A DNA stretch of 63,340 bases, filler included, from Guillardia theta CCMP2712 (Eukaryota; Protista; Cryptophyta): the NCBI RefSeq assembly GCF_000315625.1. It is 7 parts of 7 records of this genome, joined end to end, with 100 filler letters (N's around TTAATTAATTAA, not from the genome) between each part and the next. Parts side by side here need not be neighbours in the genome. Positions count along the whole stretch, not along the records: positions 31,310 to 40,547 come from NW_005434564.1; 6 more parts are not named here. One strand, given 5' to 3'. Of the stretch, positions 12,344 through 41,706 are shown in pieces. How positions within the stretch are numbered: position 1 is the stretch's first letter; each line of letters begins with the position of its first letter. Made by a program: the position numbers and the translations under genes. A model generated the notes under the pieces. That model worked only from the letters and a program-made list of their open reading frames with translations, searched no databases and was not told the origin of the DNA.

Positions 12344-15300
12344 TGTCGCTATAGACCTCCTCTCAGTCAATGAAAGAGCCAAACTGTGGATTGACGACCT
12401 TCTGATCATCGACCAGTGGACGTCACTCAGCTCGTCAACCATCGAGCGTCAAGTCACTTCGGCATTGATAGGGACTGAAGTGAGAGAGTTCTTGAACATC
12501 CGTGTGGAGTATGAGTGCCTTGCGACTTCATCCATGTAAGGCAGCTCGTTGTTCTCGATCTGTCCTGACTTGACCCCTTCAGTGACTCGTCACCCTGTCA
12601 GCTCAACCTGACATGGGCTGATCCCAACAGCACTATGGCTCCTATTCCTCGCATCTCCTTGTTCCCCAAGACTGCAGTCGCCGACCTTCCAACATGGATC
12701 ACGGTGACCCCCAACCTTCCCAGCGAGATCTCTACAGTCCACGGGTATACTTTGAACTTCTAATGATAAAGGTCTGACGGCTAGTTCAGAATCGGATTGA
12801 CCATCGCCACAGCCGGGATAACGTCCTCGTTCAGAGTTGTCCTACGAGATGTGTACGGCAACGTGAGGTGGGGATACGACGATGTAGCTGTCGCCCGACT
12901 GTGGACTACGGCATGCGCAATGGCTCCTTACAATCACACTTGTCAAGACTTGATCCCTTCGGTGTTGTACGAGAACTTTGACCACTATGACCGTCTTGAT
13001 GGTACGACCTGGGACGTCCTGCTGACCGTCCTGACTTTTTTTTAGGCTCCCCGTTCCTTAGTAGCGATCTTGTCAACATGACTCAGACTGACTCTTGCAA
13101 CCTCCGATCGTTCTCAGCTCCTATCCCAGCTGCCTGGAACCTCTCCATCGTCGAACAGCACGTCTATGTCTCCTTTGCCGGTGGAGCGTGCGAAGGCAGG
13201 TGGACTAGGGTGTCAGCTGTCAACGGAAGTTGCCTCGTGCTCAACGACACGGCCTGGGACGACGGGCAAGTCCCATGTGTGGACGAGGGACCCTTGGCCT
13301 TCCACCTCTCCTACGGCCCATGGGCAATACCAGGCTTCCCTCCCCTTGCGTGCCCTAACTGTCCGAGACTAGTCAGGTCGTTGTACACGCCATCGACAGA
13401 GGAAGGCGTGTACGATGTTGTCTACACGCCTACTCGAAAGGGACAGTACAGTGTTGTGACTTCTATCGTCGGAGACGTCGGGCTGTTTGCCACGTACTAC
13501 TCGATGGATTTCAACGCGATTGGCAAGCCTGTCGGGAGCTCCACATGGGCCAAAGGAATGGAGAACGAGTTTGCGGTAGACTGGTCGTCGAATCCAAACA
13601 TACAGTCACCAGGTATCGATGTCTAAGAACATTGCTCCTCTGCTGCTTCTTGTAGTCTTCTCCATTTTCATGCTCCGCTCTCATGCCGCTTTCTGTCGCA
13701 CATTGAATCACATGGAATGACTTGGATTTCTCAGCTCCTCTCGGTTCCACTCCCAACTCCTTTGCCATGAGATGGACCGGGTTCTTGAACGTCGACGAGG
13801 CGGCAGAGCAGAGGTTTGAACTTCAGCTGGGGGGAGGCAGCGGCAGGTCGACGACGTCGGAGAGGGTGAAGATGTGGATTGACAACAGCATCATCATCGA
13901 TCAGTGGAGCTCCCTGGCCGTCATGAATCCCACAGGATCGATAGGTACGTATCCACACAGAGCTGAGAAATCTGTGGAGAGACATGATTCTTCCCACTGC
14001 TTACGGTTTGACGAGAGCTCATATGAATGATATTCATGTCAACAGGATTCGGCATTAGAGGAGGATTCTATGATCTAAGTATCTTGTACAAGGTGATTTC
14101 AAGTCTCCGACCTCCATCTCTTGTCTCTTACACTTCACACAGTGCATGGACAACAACCTGGGCTGTGGCGTCACTCTCAGAAGGAATTCAACCCTACTGA
14201 AAAGGGTTCCCGGCAAGCAAGTCTATCATAGGATCGACGTCCCGAACCCGCTCGGAGATCTGCTTGTGCGGGCTGCTGTTACGTGCGCATCGAGAAGGTA
14301 ACCTGCTTGCAAGTTAGTCGACATCTTGTGACGTTCATCACAGTTTTGCGTTCGGCGCTCAGCTCACCATCGCAACTGCTGGAGTCGAGGCTTCCTTCCT
14401 CGTTCTGTCAAGGTGACGAGGCTGATGGAAAGTGCGAGACTTCGTGACGGGAGTGCGGCAGAGATGCGTATGAGAATATCAACGATCACTTCACCCCAGA
14501 GTTCAAAGTCATTCTTGAAGGACAAGGTGAGAAACTCTCTCATCTCGTCTCACCTCATCGCCTCCCAAGGTGCCGTGCCCGTCTACCAGGCCAAGGTCAA
14601 GCTCTACCAAGAACCGCAGGGGTTGTACTCAGTGCACTATACTGCCAACGAGGCGAAATCTTATACAGTAATTTGAATTGTTCATCCTCCATTTCGGCTT
14701 GACGAACCTGGCAGGTGATGGCTCGGCATGGCCTCATGAACCTTCAGGGAGGGCCCTATGTGCTGCTTGTCAAGCCCAACACATTCTGCGCGTCAAAGAG
14801 CACGATGACAGGCAGCGGTTTGACCCTCGCTCAAGTGCTGCCAGCTGTCAGCACGTTTGAGATTCAGCTCCGAGACTCGTTCTCCAACAGGAAGACCAGC
14901 TCTACCAACGTGAGTCCCTTCCCAGCTGCTGAGCAGCTGAGGGAGATCTGACGGCTGCGTCAGGAGCGCGGACGGTTTGCTCTGCGCGTCACGAGGGACT
15001 TCTGGCCTCCGATTGACAACTCCTACATTCTCTCTGAGAGTGACATCGCTCTTGCCAAGCAAGGAGTACTTCCCACCGTCCATGCGCTGCTCGCTGCTGA
15101 CGGAAACGTAAAATTTCTCTAAACTTCCAGCTCCTTCTCGACTGACTTGCTCTCAGAACGGCACCCTCCAAGGATCCTACTCCCTATCTCCCTCTCCTTG
15201 GAGCTATGCCGTCACATCGCGCTTCCTGGGATCGTGGGGAGCAGTAAGACCAGTCCCTCTCCTCCTCCACAGCCACTGACCTCTTGCTGTAGCCTGGCAG

Positions 15301-31309: not shown

Positions 31310-33825
31310 CATCTCTGCGAATTTACTCAGTGCTATGAACAGGAGGCTAAGAGATCGACGCTCTATGTCGTCGCTCTCCGCCTCCTGCTCAAGCTCAGCA
31401 GCTGCCGTTGCCCGTGGCGAGAACGCGCTGCCCCTCCTTGCCTTCTTGCTCTCTCCTTGCACGCGAGTCCAGCGCTTGCTCTGCAGCCACTTCCCCAGCT
31501 TCTCCTTGAGCGCGTTGCGTCCCACTCCCTGCTCCTCTGGCATCTTCGCCCACTCTCCCAGCGCCATGAACTCCAGGCTCCCCGGAGAGTAGAACGTGTC
31601 GTGGAGGTTGCCAACGGCCTTGTCCAGGACCAGCTTGATCGGCTCGCTCGTCCCCGCCTCGTTCAAAGAAGCTGCATCTTCGATGACTGCTGACAGCTCG
31701 CTGACGAGCTGCATGTCCTCTTGGCTTGACGGAGATGCTGCCTCCATTGTGATCCTCTCCAGGTCTGTAAACTCCAGCCACTCTCCCTCGCTCTCCTCCT
31801 GTCGCTGCGCTGCGTCGCTGGTGCCCCGCTGACCAGCCGCCTCAGAGTCAGGCTCCTTGTCGAAGCCGACTGCTTCGAGCTTGGTTGCTGCGCCTTCGAG
31901 ATAGAAGGGCAGCTCCTTCATCATGCGTCGAGCATCCTCCGTGGAGCCGAGGAGGATGCATAGCTTGGACCCGTTCCAGGACTTGGTGTTCAAATCCTCC
32001 TCCATGTCGATGCCTTCAACGTTGATCTCGAGCCTGTTAGCGATCTCCAACAAGACTCTCTTGACTCTTGCGATAGACGTGTTGCCGCCGTTGCACAGCC
32101 CCTCCATCTCCTTCCTCGTGAAGCGACCAGATGCCGCCGTCGACTTGATGATGATCTTGATCTCCTTGCCGTCCTTGCCGCCTGCCTTCTTCTGCATCCT
32201 TGATGCCTTCTTCAACTTATTTCTGGACACAAAGCGATCAGCTGTCAACTCGACTGCGAGCGCCTCTCTGATCTTCGGGTCCTCGCTGAACAGAGTCAGG
32301 TGTACTCCCTCCATCGCTTCGCTCTCTCGGAAAGCTCGAAATGCTGTATCATTCGCCTCTGGGCAGCTCGAGGAGACGATCCACTCCACCTCCCTCTGTC
32401 TCCAGATGACGTTGGCCCCTACAGCGATGAAGCCTTTCTGACCTAAGCCTTTGTGGACTTGCTGTCCTGGCGCCCCAGCGACCAGCATGCCTGCCAGCGG
32501 CTGGAGTTGGACCGCTGCAAGGGACTGGCGCAGCAGCTGATAGCGATAGACGGCAGCTATCTCAGCCGTTGTCATGCCGCCCAAAGGTTAACAAGTGGGT
32601 CAGCTCTGCCAAGCTGCCCCCTTTGCCCCAGGGTCCTCTTCTTGGCTCGAATCTTGAAAGATCGATCGTGCACGATGCTCACATGTACAGCTGTGAACTT
32701 GCGACCATCGATCGCGAAGTCCTCTCTTCCCTGCCAGAGCTTCTCCGCTTGTGCATTGCGGAGGAAGGAAACAGTCACCGGGATCTCCTCAGCACTCGCT
32801 ATCTCGGGTCTATACGGAGCCTTCCACATGATTGCTTTACTCTCTTGCACTGAGTCTACGATCAGCCCGATCTCTTCAAATTTCTTCTTCAGCTTTTCTT
32901 CATGGTTGACATACACCGAGGAGATGCCCAGGAGAGTCATGGAGATGAAGGAAGTCACCTCGTTGCCTGCTGAGGCGGTGTATGTCTCGACCTTCTCCTT
33001 CTTGGCTTCTTCAATCTGCTGCATAAACCACTCTCTGGATGCGTCACTCCATCCAGTCATCGCTTCTTGCAGAAGCTCACGTCGTGCCTGCTGACATGTC
33101 GAGCGGATGGCTTCTGCGATAGCGTCGGGGCTGCATCCCTCCACAGCCTTGCAAGCCTGGGCTGTCCTGCTGTTCGGATAACGCTTCGCGAAGCTCTTCA
33201 CCCTCTCGACGAGATCAGCTTCGAGGACAGAGGCATCCACAAGTCCGCTCTGCGTGTATTGGCATGATCTCCGATACAGCAGGTTGCGAACATTTTCATC
33301 ATACTGAAGAACCATACTTAGAAAGCTATTTGAAGTATACAAACCTCTCGCTTGCAGCTTCCTTGGCGCCCTGGCAGCTTCCCCTACACCACGCGTGCAG
33401 CCATGGTGCCTGAAATAACCGGCGCTGGTGCCTGAAATAACCGGCGCTGGTGCCTGAAATAACCGGCGCTGGTGCCTGAAATAACCGGCGCTGGTGCCTG
33501 AAATAACCGGCGCTGGTGCCTGAAATAACCGGCGCTGGTGCCTGAAATAACCGGCGCTGGTGCCTGAAATATACGGCGCTGGTGCCTGAAATAACCGGCG
33601 CTGGTGCCTGAAATAACCGGCGCTGGTGCCTGAAATAACCGGCGCTGGTGCCTGAAATAACCGGCGCTGGTGCCTGAAATAACCGGCGCTGGTGCCTGAA
33701 ATAACCGGCGCTGGTGCCTGAAATAACCGGCGCTGGTGCCTGAAATAACCGGCGCTGGTGCCTGAAATAACCGGCGCTGGTGCCTGAAATAACCGGCGCT
33801 GGTGCCTGAAATAACCGGCGCTGGT
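31310..33825 (-). mobile_element. Putative 5' half of a non-LTR retrotransposon: 22-bp monomer array plus long intronless ORF1-like frame, truncated by the contig end
   Basis: ORFs 32572-33342 and 31310-32584 join with one extra nt in a T run; ATG at 33404 in GGCACCATGG context; RRM-like segments (LKKKFEEIGLIVDSV...VTVSFLRNAQAEKLWQGREDFAIDGRKF and KLCILLGSTEDARRMMKELPFYLEG); no RT inside the contig. Confidence 0.5.
33405..33825 (+). repeat. Tandem array of GGTGCCTGAAATAACCGGCGCT (22 bp, about 19 copies)
   Basis: Near-perfect copies with one variant (AAATATACGG) at about 33570. Confidence 0.95.
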
Positions 33826-34036
33826 CCCAAACCCCTACCCTAAACCCTAAACCCTAAACCCTAACCCTAAACCCTAAACCCTAAACCCTAAACCCTAAAC
33901 CCTAAACCCTAAACCCTAAACCCTAAACCCTAAACCCTAAACCCTAAACCCTAAACCCTAAACCCTAAACCCTAAACCCTAAACCCTAAACCCTAAACCC
34001 TAAACCCTAAACCCTAAACCCTAAACCCTAAACCCT
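33826..34036 (+). repeat. Telomeric repeat tract (CCCTAAA)n, about 28 units, internal to the contig
   Basis: Arabidopsis-type TTTAGGG repeat on the minus strand, with degenerate units at both junctions. Confidence 0.95.
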
Positions 34037-34059
34037 TAACGCTCCCCATTTGATCTCAA

Positions 34060-34600
34060 AAGCTACCGCTTTTGCTGCGACAAGTTCGCCGCTTGAACCA
34101 AGTCGTCTTGAATCAGCAGACCGCCCGGCAACTCCTACCGTCGATGAGATGTTGGAAAAGATCGCCGACACAGTCCGTCAAGGCAAAGCCCGTTTCAAAA
34201 CCGATGAGCAGCTACGTGTTCCTGATCGCCGATATCTCGCGTTCATTACACCGATTGGTCACTACCAATACAAGCGCCTACCATTTGGATTCATCACTGC
34301 CAGCAGCATATTCCAAGGATTCATCCAGCAGGTTCTCCATGATCTACCCCACACGTTTGCATACATCGACGACATCGTCATCGCTACGTATTCCACCTGG
34401 GAAGCTCATACAGATCACGTTCGCGCCGTGCTTCAACGCTGTCGCGAGCATCAGGTCTTCCTTAAGAGAGACTGAAAGCGCAATTCTTTCGCACTAGTGT
34501 TGACTTCTTAGGTCACCGTGTCTCCGCTGACGGCGTGACGACCCAACACTCCAAGACGGCGGCTATCTCCGCGTGGCCGCTACCGACCGTCCCGACTCAG
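34060..34600 (+). mobile_element. Degenerate Ty3/Gypsy reverse transcriptase fragment
   Basis: YRFCCD..RRLN, AFITPIGHYQYKRLPFG, FAYIDDIVI, then after a frameshift VDFLGHRVSADGV...AISAWPLP; internal deletions and frameshifts. Confidence 0.85.
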
Positions 34601-35520
34601 AGACTAAAAGTTTCCTTAGCCTCAGCCTCACACGGTCACCTGGCAGGAGAGTTGCCGCTCGAGTCTCCTCCCCATGGCCTTCGGTCGCCACCCGGTGACC
34701 TAATCCTCCTCCCGGGCCATTCAGCTTCCGCTCAGGCCTTCGAGTCCCCCTCTAAATGAACCCTAAACCCTAAGGAGTCATGCTATCGGCTCAAGGAACC
34801 GGTCGGAAGTTCGGCCGCGCAGAAGTCAAACTTGAAGCTTATTACTGCAGTGAGGCCCACTGAGCAATTTTTTTCTTCTTCGAAGTTCCCGCCGGTGTCA
34901 GGCCCTCAAGAATCCTCCGTCACGAGTACCGGCATCCTGATAATGTCCTCGTACTGATCGGATTTTTGACTTAAAACTTTGAGTAAACACACTGAGACAC
35001 ACACTAGTACTAGCACTGCAACTGCCGAAGTTACGCGTAACTTCGAAGAAATCACTCAATACTACACTGCTACTACTGCGTCAACTCACGAGTGGTACCC
35101 GAGAATGATCTTTTCTTTTTTTGGGGTCCAAATACTGCATGTTGACTTGGAATGAATCTGTAAATATGTTGTAATGAATAAACATTTTGCTTATTCATTT
35201 CAAATTGACAGTGAATAATTGGTAAAATGACCTTACCAATTGAACAAAAGCATTAGGCGTACGGAATTGTCAGGGGGAGGGAGGAAGAAGCACAGAGCGT
35301 GAGGGAAGTGAGGTCAAAGATGGGTGAAAGAGGTAGCACAGCTCATTGTTGGGAAACAGCTAATGCTGGCATAGTGAAGGAAACGAAAGAGACAGTTAAT
35401 GCTGGCATAGAGAAGGAAGCGAGCAATGTCTGATGCACACAGGAACATTTGTTGTGTTGGAATTCTAAAAACTTTTTGGGTTTAGGTAACCTGCTTGTCC
35501 GCTCCGGTTCGCCGAAACTG

Positions 35521-37614
35521 ATGGCCGGTCCTTCAACGACTCTGGCATGTCTTGTATGTGCCCTCATGTGCTCATCACTTGTATCTGCAGCCTTAAACAA
35601 CACTGTAGTTGATTATGGTTGTGATGGATGTCTCAAAGGGCAAACAATCACTGCTATGTACCTTGCAAACGATTACACTGTTAACGAGGCAGCCAAATTG
35701 AAAATGGAATCCTTGGGCCTGACTTATGATTGTAATGATCCCGTCAAAGCAGTGCCTGAATGCTTTCTGTATTCTAACTGGAACAAGGGAGTTGTGGGTG
35801 ACCTAGCGAACAAGATCTTCTCAAAACTTGGCGCAAACGTGATAGTAAAGACAAAGGCAAACTTCACGGCACAGTCAAAGGCGCTTTATAATGGACCTTC
35901 CTCATTCACTCGATGTGTCTATGAGGTTGCCATAAAAAACGTGGATGTTTGCATTGGGAACTTCTGGGAGACCAATGAGAGAAGACGTCTCGCTACCTTC
36001 ACATCAAGTGAGGAATGAAGTCTCTCTTCAATCGTCAACTGATCCATTATTGTAGGTTTTGATCTCGATGCAATGTTCTTGGTCTCCGCTCCCAAGAATG
36101 GAGTAGGATCCGACAGCTCGACTGATTTCAATCCTTCAGACCTGCTTGCCATTTTCAAGCCTTTCACTCCAGCAGTGTGGGGAGTGACAGTTGCATTCTT
36201 CTTTGCTACTGCAATATGCATGTGGATCCTCGAAGCCGGAGTTGACACTGTCAACGAGAACTTCTCTCATGAGAATGATCAGCTATGGAACATTTCTGGT
36301 TTCTTCATGAGCTTGTGGTTGTCGTTCATGGGATATGTCGGAGGCTCCCATGCACACATGGCAACAAGATGGCCGTCGCGGCTGATTCTGCTGGGTTACG
36401 GCTTCCTCCTTTACATCACGGTTTCTTCTTATACCGCCAACCTTGCGAGTTTCATGGTCAACAAGGCATCAGTTCCCTCGCTGATCAACAGCATCGCGGA
36501 CGCTGGGAAGAAAGGAGTGAGCGTCTGCGTCCTAGATGCGATGGCCAGCTTGATCTACAACTTCGTGCCTAAGGTGAGGGCCGCTGCTGCTTCGTCACTC
36601 CTGATACGTTCTGTTCCTGCAGGAGCAAGTTATTGGATATGACGTGATTGGACCAGCGATCGAAGGAATCTACTCTGGAAAGTGTGGAGCCGTGATAATA
36701 GGAAGGGACTACTATAAGCAGTACATAGTGGCTGAGAAGATCAACTTCAATGTCTGCAAGGATCCTTCGGATCCTAAAGGATTCGAGAAATGTCAAGACC
36801 CTACAAAGAAATCCACCAAGATCTGGCTTGACTGCAAATGTAGCGATTCTACCAAAGATCCCTCGGAATGCAAGAAAGATTGTCCTGACTATAGGAAATA
36901 CTGCGAGCTTCTCACTATTGCGGATGCAAATTTTCAAGTCTCTGTGCCAACTGGATTTCCAGTTGCTCGGGAGTTCGTTGATCATATTTCAGCATCTATT
37001 GTCAACTTTCGGCTTGACGGGACCATTGATCGTTTGTTCAAACTATACATCGACGACAATTTCCAGCCAGTTTGCACCTCAACCGCGGAGAGTGACTCGC
37101 TTGCTTTGGATCTTTTCAGTCTCGCAGGGACATACGTCATCTCAGGGGGCCTGATGGTCATCGGGCTGGTCATGGGAGTCATTGAGATTGTGATGAACAA
37201 GAAGAAGCAACCAAGCGAGGAGAGCGACAGCACGAGTCAGCGAGAAACAGAGGAGGATGTTCCCCTTGGAGTCGCAAAGAGAGCATTCGAGCTGGAGAAG
37301 GTCAAGCATGAGGAGCTCAAGGAGTTTGGACTTGTGGGCAGTGCCAATGATGAAAATGAGAGCGTACGACAACAAATTCAAGTGCTCAATTTCAAAATGT
37401 CGGAAGTGATTCATGAGCTCAGGGAGCTCAAGGTAAGTTTGTTTGAACCTTGTCCTTGCTTTTATGCCCTGGCTCGTTACAAACTGTCAAGCACTGACAT
37501 TGATCTTTGAAGGCAAAATCGCCGAGGTATGGCTCAGCAGACGCCAGCCTTGTCCTCGCATCTGAAGCGAAAGAACGCAGCAAAGGTGCGCATCTCGGAA
37601 GAGAATCTGCATGA
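35521..37614 (+). CDS. Ionotropic glutamate receptor-like ligand-gated ion channel (4 exons)
   Basis: Signal peptide; S1 VDVCIGNFWETNERRRLATFT; M1 IFKPFTPAVW; M3 VSSYTANLASFM; M4 LDLFSLAGTYVISGGLMVIGLV; three GT-AG introns restore the frame. Confidence 0.85.
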
Positions 37615-38205
37615 TGTGCAGGTTCAAGATTGACATGATTCACAGAAACTACTGCAAGTAGGAACAATAAGGAATCTGGGTTCTTCGCAAACAATTGGTG
37701 GCCTATGTCGTCATAGATATTTTGCATTCTCACATCGTGATTGTCACAACGCTAAAAGATATTATGTTCCTGTATTGCTAAAAGAAGATTCATTCCCATA
37801 TTGCTCAGGGATCTTCCATTCTCACTCACTTCATTGAAAGGCATCACATTCTCAGAGTTGACTGCTACAGTAATTGGTTGAGGATAAACAGGTTGGGTCA
37901 AGGGAAACTAAAGAAACGAACAACCGTCAGCAGATTAATACAAGGGTGACTAAGAGAAAGACGAGCTATGATAGGAACAATGAATACCGACGTAGGGTCG
38001 AAACAGAAGACGCCAGGCTCCGAGAATGCAGAGGAATGCTCCACAATGAGAAATGCAACACGATGCAACAGGCTGATGTATGCAGCAGCATCAATACGAG
38101 TCATCTAAGCGACGGACACCATCATCACGGCTACACTTCTCAAACTCTTTCAAGGCGCATCTATACGTATCGATGTAGTAAACAAAATTTGTAGTAACAT
38201 GATGA

Positions 38206-38767
38206 TACTCTAAGAACATACGAAGCGGGTAAGATCCTTTTTCTAAGAACATACGAAGCGGGTAAGATCCTTTTTCTAAGAACATACGAAGCGGGTAAGA
38301 TCCTACTCTAAGAACATAAGAAGCGGGTAAGATCCTACTCTAAGAACATACGAAGCGGGCAAGATCCTACTCTAAGAACATAAGAAGCGGGTAAGATCCT
38401 ACTCTAAGAACATACGAAGCGGGTAAGATCCTTTTTCTAAGAACATAAGAAGCGGGTAAGATCCTACTCTAAGAACATACGAAGCGGGTAAGATCCTACT
38501 CTAAGAACATACGAAGCGGGTAAGATCCTTTTTCTAAGAACATAAGAAGCGGGTAAGATCCTACTCTAAGAACATACGAAGCGGGCAAGATCCTACTCTA
38601 AGAACATAAGAAGCGGGTAAGATCCTACTCTAAGAACATACGAAGCGGGTAAGATCCTACTCTAAGAACATAAGAAGCGGGTAAGATCCTACTCTAAGAA
38701 CATACGAAGCGGGTAAGATCCTACTCTAAGAACATACGAAGCGGGTAAGATCCTACTCTAAGAACAT
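38206..38767 (+). repeat. 32/33-bp minisatellite TACTCTAAGAACATACGAAGCGGGTAAGATCC, about 17 copies
   Basis: Read directly; three recurrent variant sites; no unique spacers. Confidence 0.95.
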
Positions 38768-38799
38768 AGTCACTGTGATTGTTGCTGAACGAATAAGAT

Positions 38800-40400
38800 A
38801 ATAATACACGTATGTACCATATCTCATTGTCTCAATTGCAGAAGCATGAAGCATTTTGACAAGTTTAACAAGGAAGCAAGTCGCTGCTGCTATCTCTCTT
38901 ACACGCTCACAGTTGACGGACTTTGAAGGTGGATGGGGAAGCAATGAACGAAAACAAGACCGAAGATCCGAGATATCAATATCCACCCAGGCGACCAGAC
39001 TAACAGCAACAGGTCAGGACGAAAAGTGAACCGCCAGTTCAATACCTTCTCAACAAGCTGCCGAATTCTCAAGCTGCAAGCGAAAGAGACAGAGAGTAAG
39101 AAAAGGAGCGAGGCAGGAAAAGAGAGACAAGCAGACGCGAGGAGAGGAGAATGGGAAGGAAGGTGTGTGGATAACCAAAAGTACGAGAAGGGCGACGAGA
39201 AGGGCAATTTAAGGAGCAGGGAGCCGGGAGCAGGGATCGGGGAGACGGGAGCAGGGATCTATCAAGTGCAGAGTAAACCTGAAGTCTTCTCGCTGCATGA
39301 GCTGCTGAAGAGAAATACTGATATCAAGTCAGAACCATCAACGATGCGGAAACAGCAGCACCGAGATCTCCAGCGCCAATAATGCTGCGGGTTAGGCGGC
39401 CAGTTGATCTGATCCGCTCTGAAAGAAAACGAGTCAGAGAAGGAACGAGTGAACGTCTGAATCTCAGATAAGAATAAACGAAGCGACAATGAACGAAAAT
39501 GAGGGGCTTTGAAGGGTGGAGAAACAAAGGGGGCGAGAAGCAAAGGGAGAGGAAAAAGTGGGTAAGGAATAAAGCAGGATGGAAGGAGAGAATCCAAGAT
39601 GCCTTGGGTTTGGCGAAGCAAAATGATGATCCATAGCCAAGAAATCCTGAGCTGATTGTCAACCGACATGAACAAGAAAAGAAACAGACAGAAAGGCATG
39701 AGCATGAGCATGATGAGGAGTGGGTACAGAAAGGAGGAGAATGCGAAGAAGCAGACAAACAGCAGCATCAAAAGCCAAAGCCAAAGCAAAGCCGAAGCAG
39801 GAGCATACTCGGGAGCGAAAGAAGTAGGAGGAGCAGGAGCAGCAGTCGATGTAGGAGCAGGAACAGGAGCAGGAGCAGGAGCAGCAGTCGATGTAGGAGC
39901 AGGAGCAGGAGCAGGAACAGGAGCAGGCAGCATAGCAGCGATGGAGTACTGGCATGTTGAAGACATGCCTGAATAGGAAAGACGGCCCAGATTGAGGGAG
40001 ACCACATATGCTGCTCGACGATCATGGAGATGATCTGATATCATAGGTCACAAGCTCGATCCTGCTTGTCTCACTCGCCTCTGTCGAGAACTTGTGAGGA
40101 GGATCTCCCGGGCGCTGCAGCAGAACATTCCAGAACTCCTGGAGAAACCTTGAGAGGTCTAGAACAAGAGCGATAGAAGAAAGCGCAAGGTTAGGAAAGG
40201 CGAGCCGAGGCGAGGCGAGAACAGGGGATGCATGGCAAAGAAAGAAAGATTAGGGTTTAGGATTCTGGTGTTGACCTTTCGAAGATGAGCTGGCATTTCT
40301 TCCCACCATCCGGCAACAGTTGACATGTCATGGCAGGATGGAGTGCAAACAGACAAATAAGGATATCTGAAGCACACGTCACCTTGAGACAACCCCTTCC
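38800..40400 (-). CDS. Probable multi-exon gene of unknown function; boundaries approximate
   Basis: Short GT-AG-bounded segments (for example STGRLTRSIIGAGDLGAAVSASLM) between pyrimidine-rich introns. Confidence 0.3.
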
Positions 40401-41706
40401 TCTCCTTTCCCCTCTTTCCCTTTCCTTCCCCCCCCCCCCTCCCCTCCTCCTTCTATATGTTTAACAGTAGGATGGGGAGGTTTGGAAAGAGGAGATCAAT
40501 GAAAGGAGACATTTTGATGACGGAGAGCCTTGGAAAATTAGCCGGTTNNNNNNNNNNNNNNNNNNNNNNNNNNNNNNNNNNNNNNNNNNNNTTAATTAAT
40601 TAANNNNNNNNNNNNNNNNNNNNNNNNNNNNNNNNNNNNNNNNNNNNATTCTCTCCCTCTCCTCACAGGAAATCTCTCGGATTGAAGTTCCTTCTTTCCC
40701 TCCGTCTCAGGTCTCCTCCTCCTCCTCCTCCTCCTCCTCCTCCTCCTCTTCCTCCTCCTCCTCCGCCTTCTCTCCGCCTTCTCTCCACCTATCTCCACCA
40801 CCTCTTTGCCTCCTCTGCCACACCCTCCCCCTGACTCTGCCTCAGGCGCCGCTACCAGCTGTTCCTTCAGCCCGCGTCCTCCTCTCCTCCCCTCTCTTCG
40901 CGTCGCAGCCGAAGAATTGGTGGGAGTAAAGAAACAACATCGGCTAGGAAACGACATCGACCAACTGTCGAGGGTTGAAAGGGAACTTACTTCTTCATGT
41001 GAATGTTGTGTGAAAGCAAATTCTTCTTCAATGAAAGAACTTCATCAAACTACATTTAATGAATAAAGTACATATCAACATGTACAGCGAGGCTCAACGG
41101 AGCCCAGCTACGATAGAGCTGCTATCTTTTTTTCCGGATTGGGAGGTACAGATTGCGTTTCGTCCAAGTCCAGCTGGACGGAGCAGGCGTGCACCGCCTG
41201 ACTCCTCCTGCTTGGCTAGACGCCCCGCACCACCAAGATACTCAAGTCTCACCAAAGCCGACAGTCGAAAGAAGGTCCACCCCTCCCTCACGACTTCGCG
41301 GCCTTGGGTCTCCAGGAGCTCCCGGCAGTTACTGCACTCGTCTACTCTCACTCGTTCTGATCAGATCCAACCTGACACCCAGCTGCTTTCCCGGCTGCTG
41401 GATTACAGGGAGATCCAATCGAAGCAATCGTCCATAGGAGGCCACCTTGGCTAACCAGCTTTCTCGGCTGGCAAAAGAATGGCCTCGTCTGAACTCTCAA
41501 GCTGCTGTAAACTTGAGAGAGTTTCCCAACTGTTTGTTTTCACTGATCGGAGGTGCGAAGGATGTGAGACGTCCACCGCTCACCCTCGCGTTTTCCTTTC
41601 AGCGCCTTTGTTCAATGCTCCATCGTAACCTGAGCCACCCCCAATGCGGGGATGTGCCGGTCCCTTCACCTCTAGTATACCCCGTCCCCAGTATAGTGAC
41701 AATTGT

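Follow-up and report, generated by a model that had tools for sequence, protein, structure and literature searches.

A probable telomere-repeat-specific LINE family with an abundant ORF1-only member at chromosome ends of the cryptophyte Guillardia theta

Telomere-specific retrotransposons have been found in a few lineages (insects, Giardia, Chlorella, a fungus and rotifers) and are central to ideas on the relation between telomerase and retroelements. In Magnaporthe oryzae, MoTeR1 and MoTeR2 form a pair, one bearing a reverse transcriptase (RT) and the other non-autonomous, which have common ends, occupy telomere repeats in one orientation and carry short tandem repeats at the 5′ end; in mouse L1, tandem 5′ monomers act as the promoter. 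For SART1 of Bombyx mori, nicking of the C-rich strand within duplex repeats and a poly(A)|AGG joint in (TTAGG)n have been reported (PMC7265360). According to PMC9977147, which cites Kojima and Fujiwara 2005, the pairing of an apurinic/apyrimidinic endonuclease (APE) with a restriction-like endonuclease is unique to the Dualen/RandI elements of green algae. Here, a related system is described from the cryptophyte Guillardia theta CCMP2712. The window is a stretch of 63,340 nucleotides of this genome, and the piece under study comprises its positions 31310–40547 (record NW_005434564.1). This piece most probably holds a 2.67-kb member, with only the first open reading frame (ORF1), of a telomere-repeat-specific family of long interspersed nuclear elements (LINEs), inserted in a telomere tract that heals an old chromosome break.

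The copy in NW_005434564.1 and the reference unit

Read on the minus strand, the piece contains (TTTAGGG)n, a degenerate junction, an array of ACCAGCGCCGGTTATTTCAGGC monomers, the motif ACCATGG and a long reading frame extending to 31310, where the piece stops. The features of this copy are the following:

33837–34040, minus strand: telomere tract, (TTTAGGG)x29 (Tandem Repeats Finder: plus-strand ACCCTAA, period 7, x29.3, 98% matches)
33826–33836, minus strand: degenerate junction between both arrays, ...GGGTAGGGGTTTGGG (sequence reading)
33404–33825, minus strand: 5′ monomer array, ACCAGCGCCGGTTATTTCAGGC x19.2, period 22 (Tandem Repeats Finder, 99% matches)
33384–33404, minus strand: short upstream ORF (uORF), MAARVV-stop, 6 codons, starting within ACCATGG, where the last monomer ends (translation)
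33316–33383, minus strand: remaining 5′ leader, GGTGTAGGGGAAGCTGCCAGGG..., homologous to the leader of autonomous LINEs (junction listings)
31310–33315, minus strand: ORF1, codons 1 to about 668 of 715, intronless, cut at the piece edge (homology)

The succession of both arrays up to ACCATGG, as well as the intronless coding sequence of about 2 kb that follows, had been pointed out in an earlier note on this sequence, and both are confirmed. The same note had the monomer supply the start codon of the long ORF, which turned out to be incorrect: the ATG at 33404–33402 opens the conserved 6-codon uORF, which is also present in intact copies, while ORF1 starts at the ATG at 33315 (MVLQYDENV...), a start common to all subfamilies. 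Likewise, the frame is indeed broken twice, but the breaks are extra bases, an A near 32639–40 and a T near 32583–85 (within 60 nt), and not the two single-nucleotide deletions proposed at about 33394 and 32584. The breaks were located by tblastn against the intact protein (three frames), with contigs of other runs and by alignment with an intact copy. Because of these two frameshifts, the window copy is dead, i.e., a pseudogene of an otherwise intact family. Only the last 47 or so of the 715 codons of ORF1 lie outside the piece; GUITHDRAFT_121384 and 120524 match the part within it with 98% identity.

For comparison, nine G. theta loci around family members were used, along with three metagenome contigs of 10.4–10.7 kb (L006, L007 and L008). 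A unit of 2668 bp (L002:12584–15251) served as the reference, to which the window copy is 98.9% identical at the DNA level. About 20 copies across scaffolds are 97–99% identical to this unit and one copy is 92.6% identical; the identity of 97–99% between scaffolds reflects a recent spread of the units. The ORF1-only unit is 2.67 kb long and has a single ORF and no reverse transcriptase, so that the suggestion of an ORF2 lost beyond the contig break does not hold: the approximately 20 other copies have none either. Each unit consists of 1 to about 30 monomers, CATG with a uORF of 6–11 codons, a leader (about 70 nt), ORF1, 2.9 copies of a 76-bp repeat, the 3′ untranslated region (UTR) and a tail. 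The 190-nt 3′ UTR terminates in TCTAATAAACTCACA, followed by the (TAA)n tail, and the units are arranged head to tail with 1.5 to 29 TTTAGGG units between them.

The 22-mer of the window copy is the common 19-bp core in another register, since copies of the family show 19-, 22- and 27-bp registers, and unrelated monomers of 18–21 bp occupy the same 5′ place in other lineages. Directly after the last monomer, the CATG-initiated uORF was found at 23 of 23 complete 5′ ends in all lineages (e.g., L006 214 and L007 79), and it may represent a translational control or start-site feature. The monomer array itself (33404–33825) is a candidate for a reiterated promoter or initiator, or else for a reiterated 5′ terminus. 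Compared with mouse L1, whose monomers are about 200 bp long, those of Guillardia are short (18–27 bp) and lineage-specific, whereas the 5′ repeats of MoTeR are telomere-like variants and its non-autonomous partner has no ORF1 homologue. At the other end of the element, the blocks TTTAGAC and CTAGCATTCTAATAAA.TC.A and a trinucleotide tail are common to four lineages. RNAalifold analysis of the common 3′ UTR (−1.5 kcal/mol, 7 pairs) gave no support for a conserved RNA structure. One ORF1-only copy is split by a 2.95-kb insertion (L001 16015–18966), the ends of which, CCATGGCATTT... and ...AAATGCCATGG, resemble the terminal inverted repeats of DNA transposons.

The contig stops inside the element, the region is repetitive and the protein is without a Pfam domain, and all of this would suit an assembly artefact at the join of telomere tract, monomers and ORF, or a host gene with a telomere-box promoter. 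However, this order of parts was found again at more than 25 junctions, spread over nine G. theta scaffolds and three independent metagenome contigs, contigs of other runs pass from monomer into CCCTAAA repeats, and the synteny with ORF2 described below identifies the ORF as ORF1. An explanation of this kind is therefore extremely improbable.

ORF1, its transcripts and the autonomous relatives

Three full-length homologues of ORF1, with 30–33% identity end to end, lie on the 10.4–10.7-kb contigs. Two of these, P0051 (31% identical) and P0052 (30%), are immediately followed by ORF2 of 2575 and 2481 amino acids, respectively. Pfam analysis of ORF2 gave the following matches:

L007 and L008, ORF2 of 2481 amino acids: Exo_endo_phos (5.9e-8), RVT_1 (4e-35), weak zf-RVT
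L006, ORF2 of 2575 amino acids: Peptidase_C48 (2.8e-9), weak Exo_endo_phos, RVT_1 (1e-28), weak zf-RVT

Since its homologues directly precede an ORF2 with RVT_1 and Exo_endo_phos domains, the ORF in the window is a LINE ORF1, as the earlier note had proposed. The autonomous elements begin with monomers, CATG and the uORF, and finish with TCTAATAAA..(TAA)n or (CTA)n, after which TTTAGGG repeats follow. Based on these comparisons, the window family is best regarded as an ORF2-less derivative of APE- and RT-encoding LINEs, which has kept their 5′ design and the conserved 3′ blocks. Both autonomous types occur in the CCMP2712 assembly: L001 has, ahead of its array, 5.8 kb from the 3′ end of an L006-type copy, and at L011 8769, a 5′-truncated L007-type ORF2 (amino acids 1258–2481) is 97.7% identical over 1224 amino acids and contains no stop.

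The C-terminus of ORF2 is strongly conserved, and the CCHC, AH, PD, E and K..KY motifs read there by eye agree with the list of motifs of the R2 restriction-like endonuclease (PMC4838377). Among solved structures, the reverse transcriptase is closest to that of R2 (6e-19, versus 2e-11 for L1 ORF2p). The motifs suggest that ORF2 pairs an APE with a second, restriction-like endonuclease, as in Dualen. The second endonuclease remains a lead, because neither profile searches nor structure modelling gave anything usable: phmmer and a 3-sequence profile against the PDB were both blank for a restriction-like endonuclease, and the AlphaFold model had a predicted local distance difference test score (pLDDT) of 45. 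A homologue search by region, made for the same domain, returned one protein. The resemblance to Dualen/RandI lies in the APE domain (Pfam), the C-terminal CCHC and PD..E..K..KY motifs and the R2-like reverse transcriptase, with the difference that the putative restriction-like domain of Guillardia is recognised only by motifs seen by eye. No paper on telomere specificity, a large ORF1 or monomers was found for Dualen in the searchable literature. At its N-terminal side (residues 156–270), the ORF2 of L006 also contains a Ulp1-type cysteine protease domain (Peptidase_C48), which was not detected by Pfam in the L007-type ORF2.

A single-copy or a spliced ORF would have spoken against a retroelement, according to the earlier note. 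The C-terminal 425 codons of the window ORF1, however, match at least 46 proteins, nearly all of them annotated as 'hypothetical protein GUITHDRAFT_...' of CCMP2712 (best identity, 98%), and these are split into a subfamily with at least 85% identity and another with about 50%. An exhaustive HMMER search, run through 1.8 billion representatives, yielded no more than 47 relatives. The ones that were looked up comprise genes or transcripts of G. theta, transcripts of Hanusia phi and metagenome proteins, i.e., only cryptophyte or metagenome sequences. Intact ORF1-only copies have 715–716 codons and are intronless, although several annotated gene models of the family have spurious introns that bypass frameshifts or even a telomere tract. 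Thus, gene model P0003 (GUITHDRAFT_107157) spans the telomere tract of a chimeric copy (L003 11093–11142), and some of the family annotations are artefactual. P0009, filed in EukProt under the dinoflagellate 'Heterocapsa arctica' (a transcriptome), is 99% identical and is probably a Guillardia contamination.

No Pfam family was found on ORF1 in the three lineages scanned, and an ESM Atlas feature search with ORF1 gave no usable match. The AlphaFold model of the whole protein is mediocre (pLDDT, 61.8; predicted template modelling score, 0.44), and for this reason the domain arrangement was left uninterpreted. The best Foldseek rows for this model are proteins with multiple RNA recognition motifs (RRMs), namely Prp24, U2AF65 and PSPC1/NONO, with E-values of only about 1e-3, and residues 381–484 resemble RRM and ACT domains at Z 7–9, a range flagged as common. 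An RRM-like fold of ORF1 is thus plausible, if weakly suggested by the model, and the RRM-like character first ascribed to the ORF goes no further than this, with the Pfam scan offering it nothing. Among four near-identical intact ORF1-only copies, the ratio of nonsynonymous to synonymous substitution rates (dN/dS) is 0.10–0.36, values that are noisy because the copies differ by only 9–17 bases; among the L006-type ORF1s it is 0.14–0.18 at dS 0.4–0.6. Judging from these ratios, ORF1 is under purifying selection.

Transcripts of the family are known from MMETSP, and a 2026 RNA-seq run was aligned to 2141 letters of the copy, a target that left out most of the monomer and telomere arrays. In total, 2730 reads fell on the sense strand of the ORF (1429 of them at ≥99% identity), and no splice joints were present among them. 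The sense reads extend into the last monomers and some carry poly(A). At 32822, 31 reads have loose ends consisting of T-runs, which point to polyadenylation within ORF1, some 490 nt downstream of its start, and read depth peaks just upstream of this site (33181–32822); short 5′ transcripts may dominate. At 32866, 611 out of 615 reads have a base other than that of the window copy, and most of the reads hence come from other copies of the family. Copies of the family are thus transcribed and polyadenylated; their lack of introns says nothing as to an RNA intermediate. A candidate 5′ intron, GTGTAGGGG...TTCTTCAG, which would bring the monomer ATG into frame with ORF1, was rejected: there were no spliced reads at a depth of 6–17, and the L006-type leader, read by eye, does not preserve such an in-frame join.

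Probable insertion into telomere repeats and proposed origin of the arrays

All 26 intact 3′ ends enter telomere sequence, with a tract in 25 cases and only a GGGTTT stub at L010 8292. The expectation that copies would abut TTTAGGG and continue into an ORF2 therefore held in its first half only, the unit having no ORF2. The usual 3′ junction is TA|GGGTTTA; 15 of the 19 TAA-type ends read (TAA)n-TAGGG, and the CTA-type ends read (CTA)n-GGG in seven cases out of seven, with tail lengths of (TAA)1–7 and (CTA)5–8. Relative to the sense of the element, all of the telomere tracts at 11 related loci, the inverted block described below included, are G-strand. The distance to the end of a scaffold or contig is 0–23 kb at eight loci and at the window copy, all with an outward-directed sense strand, in a sample that is biased towards scaffold ends. 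At the window copy, the tract at 33837–34040 is the target-site flank, proximal to the 5′ end of the element. Together with the LINE relatives, these junctions bear out the proposal of a telomere-specific non-LTR (long terminal repeat) element with 5′ monomers, directed outward from the tract and with G-strand sense.

This arrangement resembles that of SART1 and TRAS1 in several respects: insertion is into the double-stranded telomere repeat and always in the same orientation, an ORF1 and an ORF2 with APE endonuclease and RT make up the autonomous members, and the elements coexist with canonical telomere repeats. A further feature in common with SART1 is that the G-strand carries the sense sequence and that the joint between 3′ tail and repeat has a fixed register. 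The Guillardia elements differ in having a (TAA)n/(CTA)n tail instead of poly(A), an ORF2 twice as long, with an Ulp1-type protease in one lineage and an R2-like CCHC/PD..E..K..KY C-terminus, an ORF1 of 700–715 amino acids with no Pfam match, 5′ monomers of 18–27 bp, an abundant ORF1-only derivative and a cryptophyte host. Because the tail is not poly(A) and the architecture of ORF2 is different, the Guillardia system, although it works like SART1, is not filed as a member of SART/TRAS.

Based on the junctions, the following course of events is proposed. In duplex telomere repeats, the ORF2 of the autonomous relatives would nick the C-rich strand, either at CCC^TAAA or within the next 2 nt, an uncertainty due to the TA overlap. 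The freed 3′-OH would serve as the primer on the RNA tail, (UAA)n or (CUA)n, which would be reverse-transcribed first, and the 3′ end of the element would thus come to lie distally. With distal 3′ ends and the G-strand as the sense strand, the polarity seen at the junctions agrees with target-primed reverse transcription that starts at a C-strand nick. Truncation at the 5′ end would arise as in other LINEs, and the monomers would provide an internal promoter or start sites. The RNA of the ORF1-only element would be copied in trans by way of the common 3′ end, as HeT-A is thought to rely on the RT of a partner. Chromosome ends would then erode into the distal element, be healed by telomerase and receive new insertions, with head-to-tail arrays as the outcome. 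At the window locus, an old chromosome break inside an unrelated retroelement would have been healed with (TTTAGGG)n and the ORF1-only element inserted in this tract later, so that the window would hold the proximal end of a subtelomeric array.

The truncated copies provide further junctions. Copies with 5′ truncations stand right after telomere repeats at L005 16798 (unit position 211), L005 15947 (unit position 1860), L011 8769 and L009 7871. Arbitrary 3′ cut-offs of elements or of other sequences, followed by telomere repeats, were found at L001 20844, L002 9815 and, in the window, 34041, as well as at L003 4725 (L007-type ORF1) and L005 9765 (L006-type ORF2).

The presence of elements at the termini, with erosion and healing indicating that they reach the very chromosome end, and the likeness of the ORF1-only partner to HeT-A could also point to an endonuclease-independent attachment to the chromosome end, by the route of HeT-A, TART or terminal Penelope-like elements, with the telomeric 3′ overhang as the primer. 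Such an overhang can be extended only with antisense cDNA, so that priming from the G-strand would leave the 3′ end of the element facing the centromere. This is contradicted by the orientation observed at every junction, and the autonomous relatives moreover have an APE endonuclease; end attachment is thus very unlikely. With HeT-A and TAHRE, the Guillardia system shares a Gag/ORF1-only element that has its ends in common with an RT-bearing relative. As in HeT-A, the ORF1-only form outnumbers this relative, is arranged head to tail at chromosome ends and has an ORF under selection. In HeT-A and TART, however, the 3′ end points towards the centromere and telomerase repeats are lacking, neither of which applies to the Guillardia elements: compared with HeT-A, TAHRE and TART, their orientation is opposite, with 3′ ends facing the chromosome end, telomerase repeats separate the units and insertion is seemingly endonuclease-dependent.

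The arrays could also belong to a subtelomeric gene or repeat family, similar to the Y′ elements of yeast, which is spread only by recombination between ends (break-induced replication or unequal exchange), with retrotransposition ancient or absent. The head-to-tail arrays with short telomere tracts between units, the identity of mostly 97–99% between units on different scaffolds, the healing of 3′-truncated units by telomere repeats and an inverted block, which proves that rearrangement occurs, would all agree with this. On the other hand, the junctions are individually different, with tails of (TAA)1–7, tracts of 1.5–29 units, from 1 to about 30 monomers and varied registers, and the 5′-truncated copies adjoin telomere repeats at differing internal positions. 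Furthermore, four divergent lineages are interleaved in a single orientation, the relatives encode an endonuclease and a reverse transcriptase (with the stop-free truncated ORF2 at L011 among them), and purifying selection acts on ORF1. Spread by recombination only is accordingly judged to be unlikely, while recombination between ends probably homogenises the arrays in addition to insertion.

Several observations nevertheless weigh against a telomere-specific LINE family as the source of the arrays. No retrotransposition event has been observed, and both the trans-mobilisation and the nick site are deduced from junctions. Recombination between chromosome ends, which probably contributes, could also spread and homogenise the arrays. 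Intact ORF2s were seen on the metagenome contigs, whereas none was seen in the CCMP2712 assembly, where the L006-type ORF2 at L001 is broken into three ORFs and the only uninterrupted stretch seen is the 5′-truncated piece of 1224 amino acids. At L003 7256 and 9645, telomere repeats are missing from the junction, and the monomers of the following element start directly at the cut of a 3′-truncated one. Template switching is one possible cause; others are insertion at an end devoid of telomere repeats and the loss of a short tract. The inverted block at L010 8666–13752 has a C-strand tract (12660–12701) and lies 22 kb from the scaffold end; placed head-to-head with the outward array, it is a rearrangement or fold-back within the subtelomere. 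Finally, copies elsewhere in the genome may have been missed, because the loci were reached through ORF1 proteins.

Proximal surroundings and significance of the family

Proximal to the telomere tract of the window copy, three further features were identified:

34050–34475, plus strand: reverse transcriptase gene fragment of another retroelement (Pfam RVT_1, 3.1e-13; YIDD and LPFG motifs by eye)
34644–34735, minus strand: older relic, one degenerate 76-bp 3′-UTR repeat of the family (blastn, 70–82% versus the repeats of L001–L005, same orientation)
34750–34775, minus strand: short telomere-like stretch preceding the 76-bp relic (sequence reading)

The reverse transcriptase fragment, which appears to derive from an LTR-type retroelement, is antisense to the array and is interrupted at 34041, where the telomere tract begins. 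This cut is the healed break that forms the base for the array. The nearest unique gene on the proximal side is an intron-containing gene for an ionotropic glutamate-receptor-like channel (35449–37510, plus strand), with a Lig_chan domain (1.2e-12), the pore motif SYTANLASFM and a weak match to a solute-binding domain upstream of Lig_chan. It is followed at 38206–38768 by a 32-bp tandem repeat (TACTCTAAGAACATACGAAGCGGGTAAGATCC, x17.5) with a higher-order period of 161 bp, which is unrelated to the monomers of the element.

A telomere-specific LINE with a Gag-only partner is in itself a known kind of system, and what is rated as new here is the host lineage, the make-up of ORF2, the family to which ORF1 belongs, monomers this short and a uORF that is conserved. 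In agreement with the earlier note, which knew of no such family described for this kind of genome, no paper on telomere-specific LINEs in cryptophytes or on telomere-specific Dualen-like elements was found in the searchable literature. As a bolder proposal, to which we assign a rather low probability, the chromosome ends of Guillardia might be maintained jointly by telomerase and a guild of retrotransposons. The ORF1-only element would then be a semi-domesticated end-buffer comparable to HeT-A, with ORF1 targeting ribonucleoproteins to telomeres and with monomer arrays produced by the RT re-copying the extreme 5′ end of the RNA. If this were true, each new copy would rebuild its own promoter, and retrotransposon-assisted telomeres would have had an independent origin in Cryptista, by way of a LINE with two endonucleases.

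At the level of the genome, the family accounts for about 46 gene models of 'hypothetical proteins' at scaffold ends of G. theta, and the element provides a marker for chromosome ends in cryptophyte assemblies. With regard to telomere-specific retroelements in general, the family would add a cryptophyte system that combines SART-like insertion with a HeT-A-like ORF1-only partner under selection. The other traits in this combination would be an unusually large ORF2, probably with a protease as well as two endonucleases, a conserved uORF and short 5′ monomers specific to each lineage.

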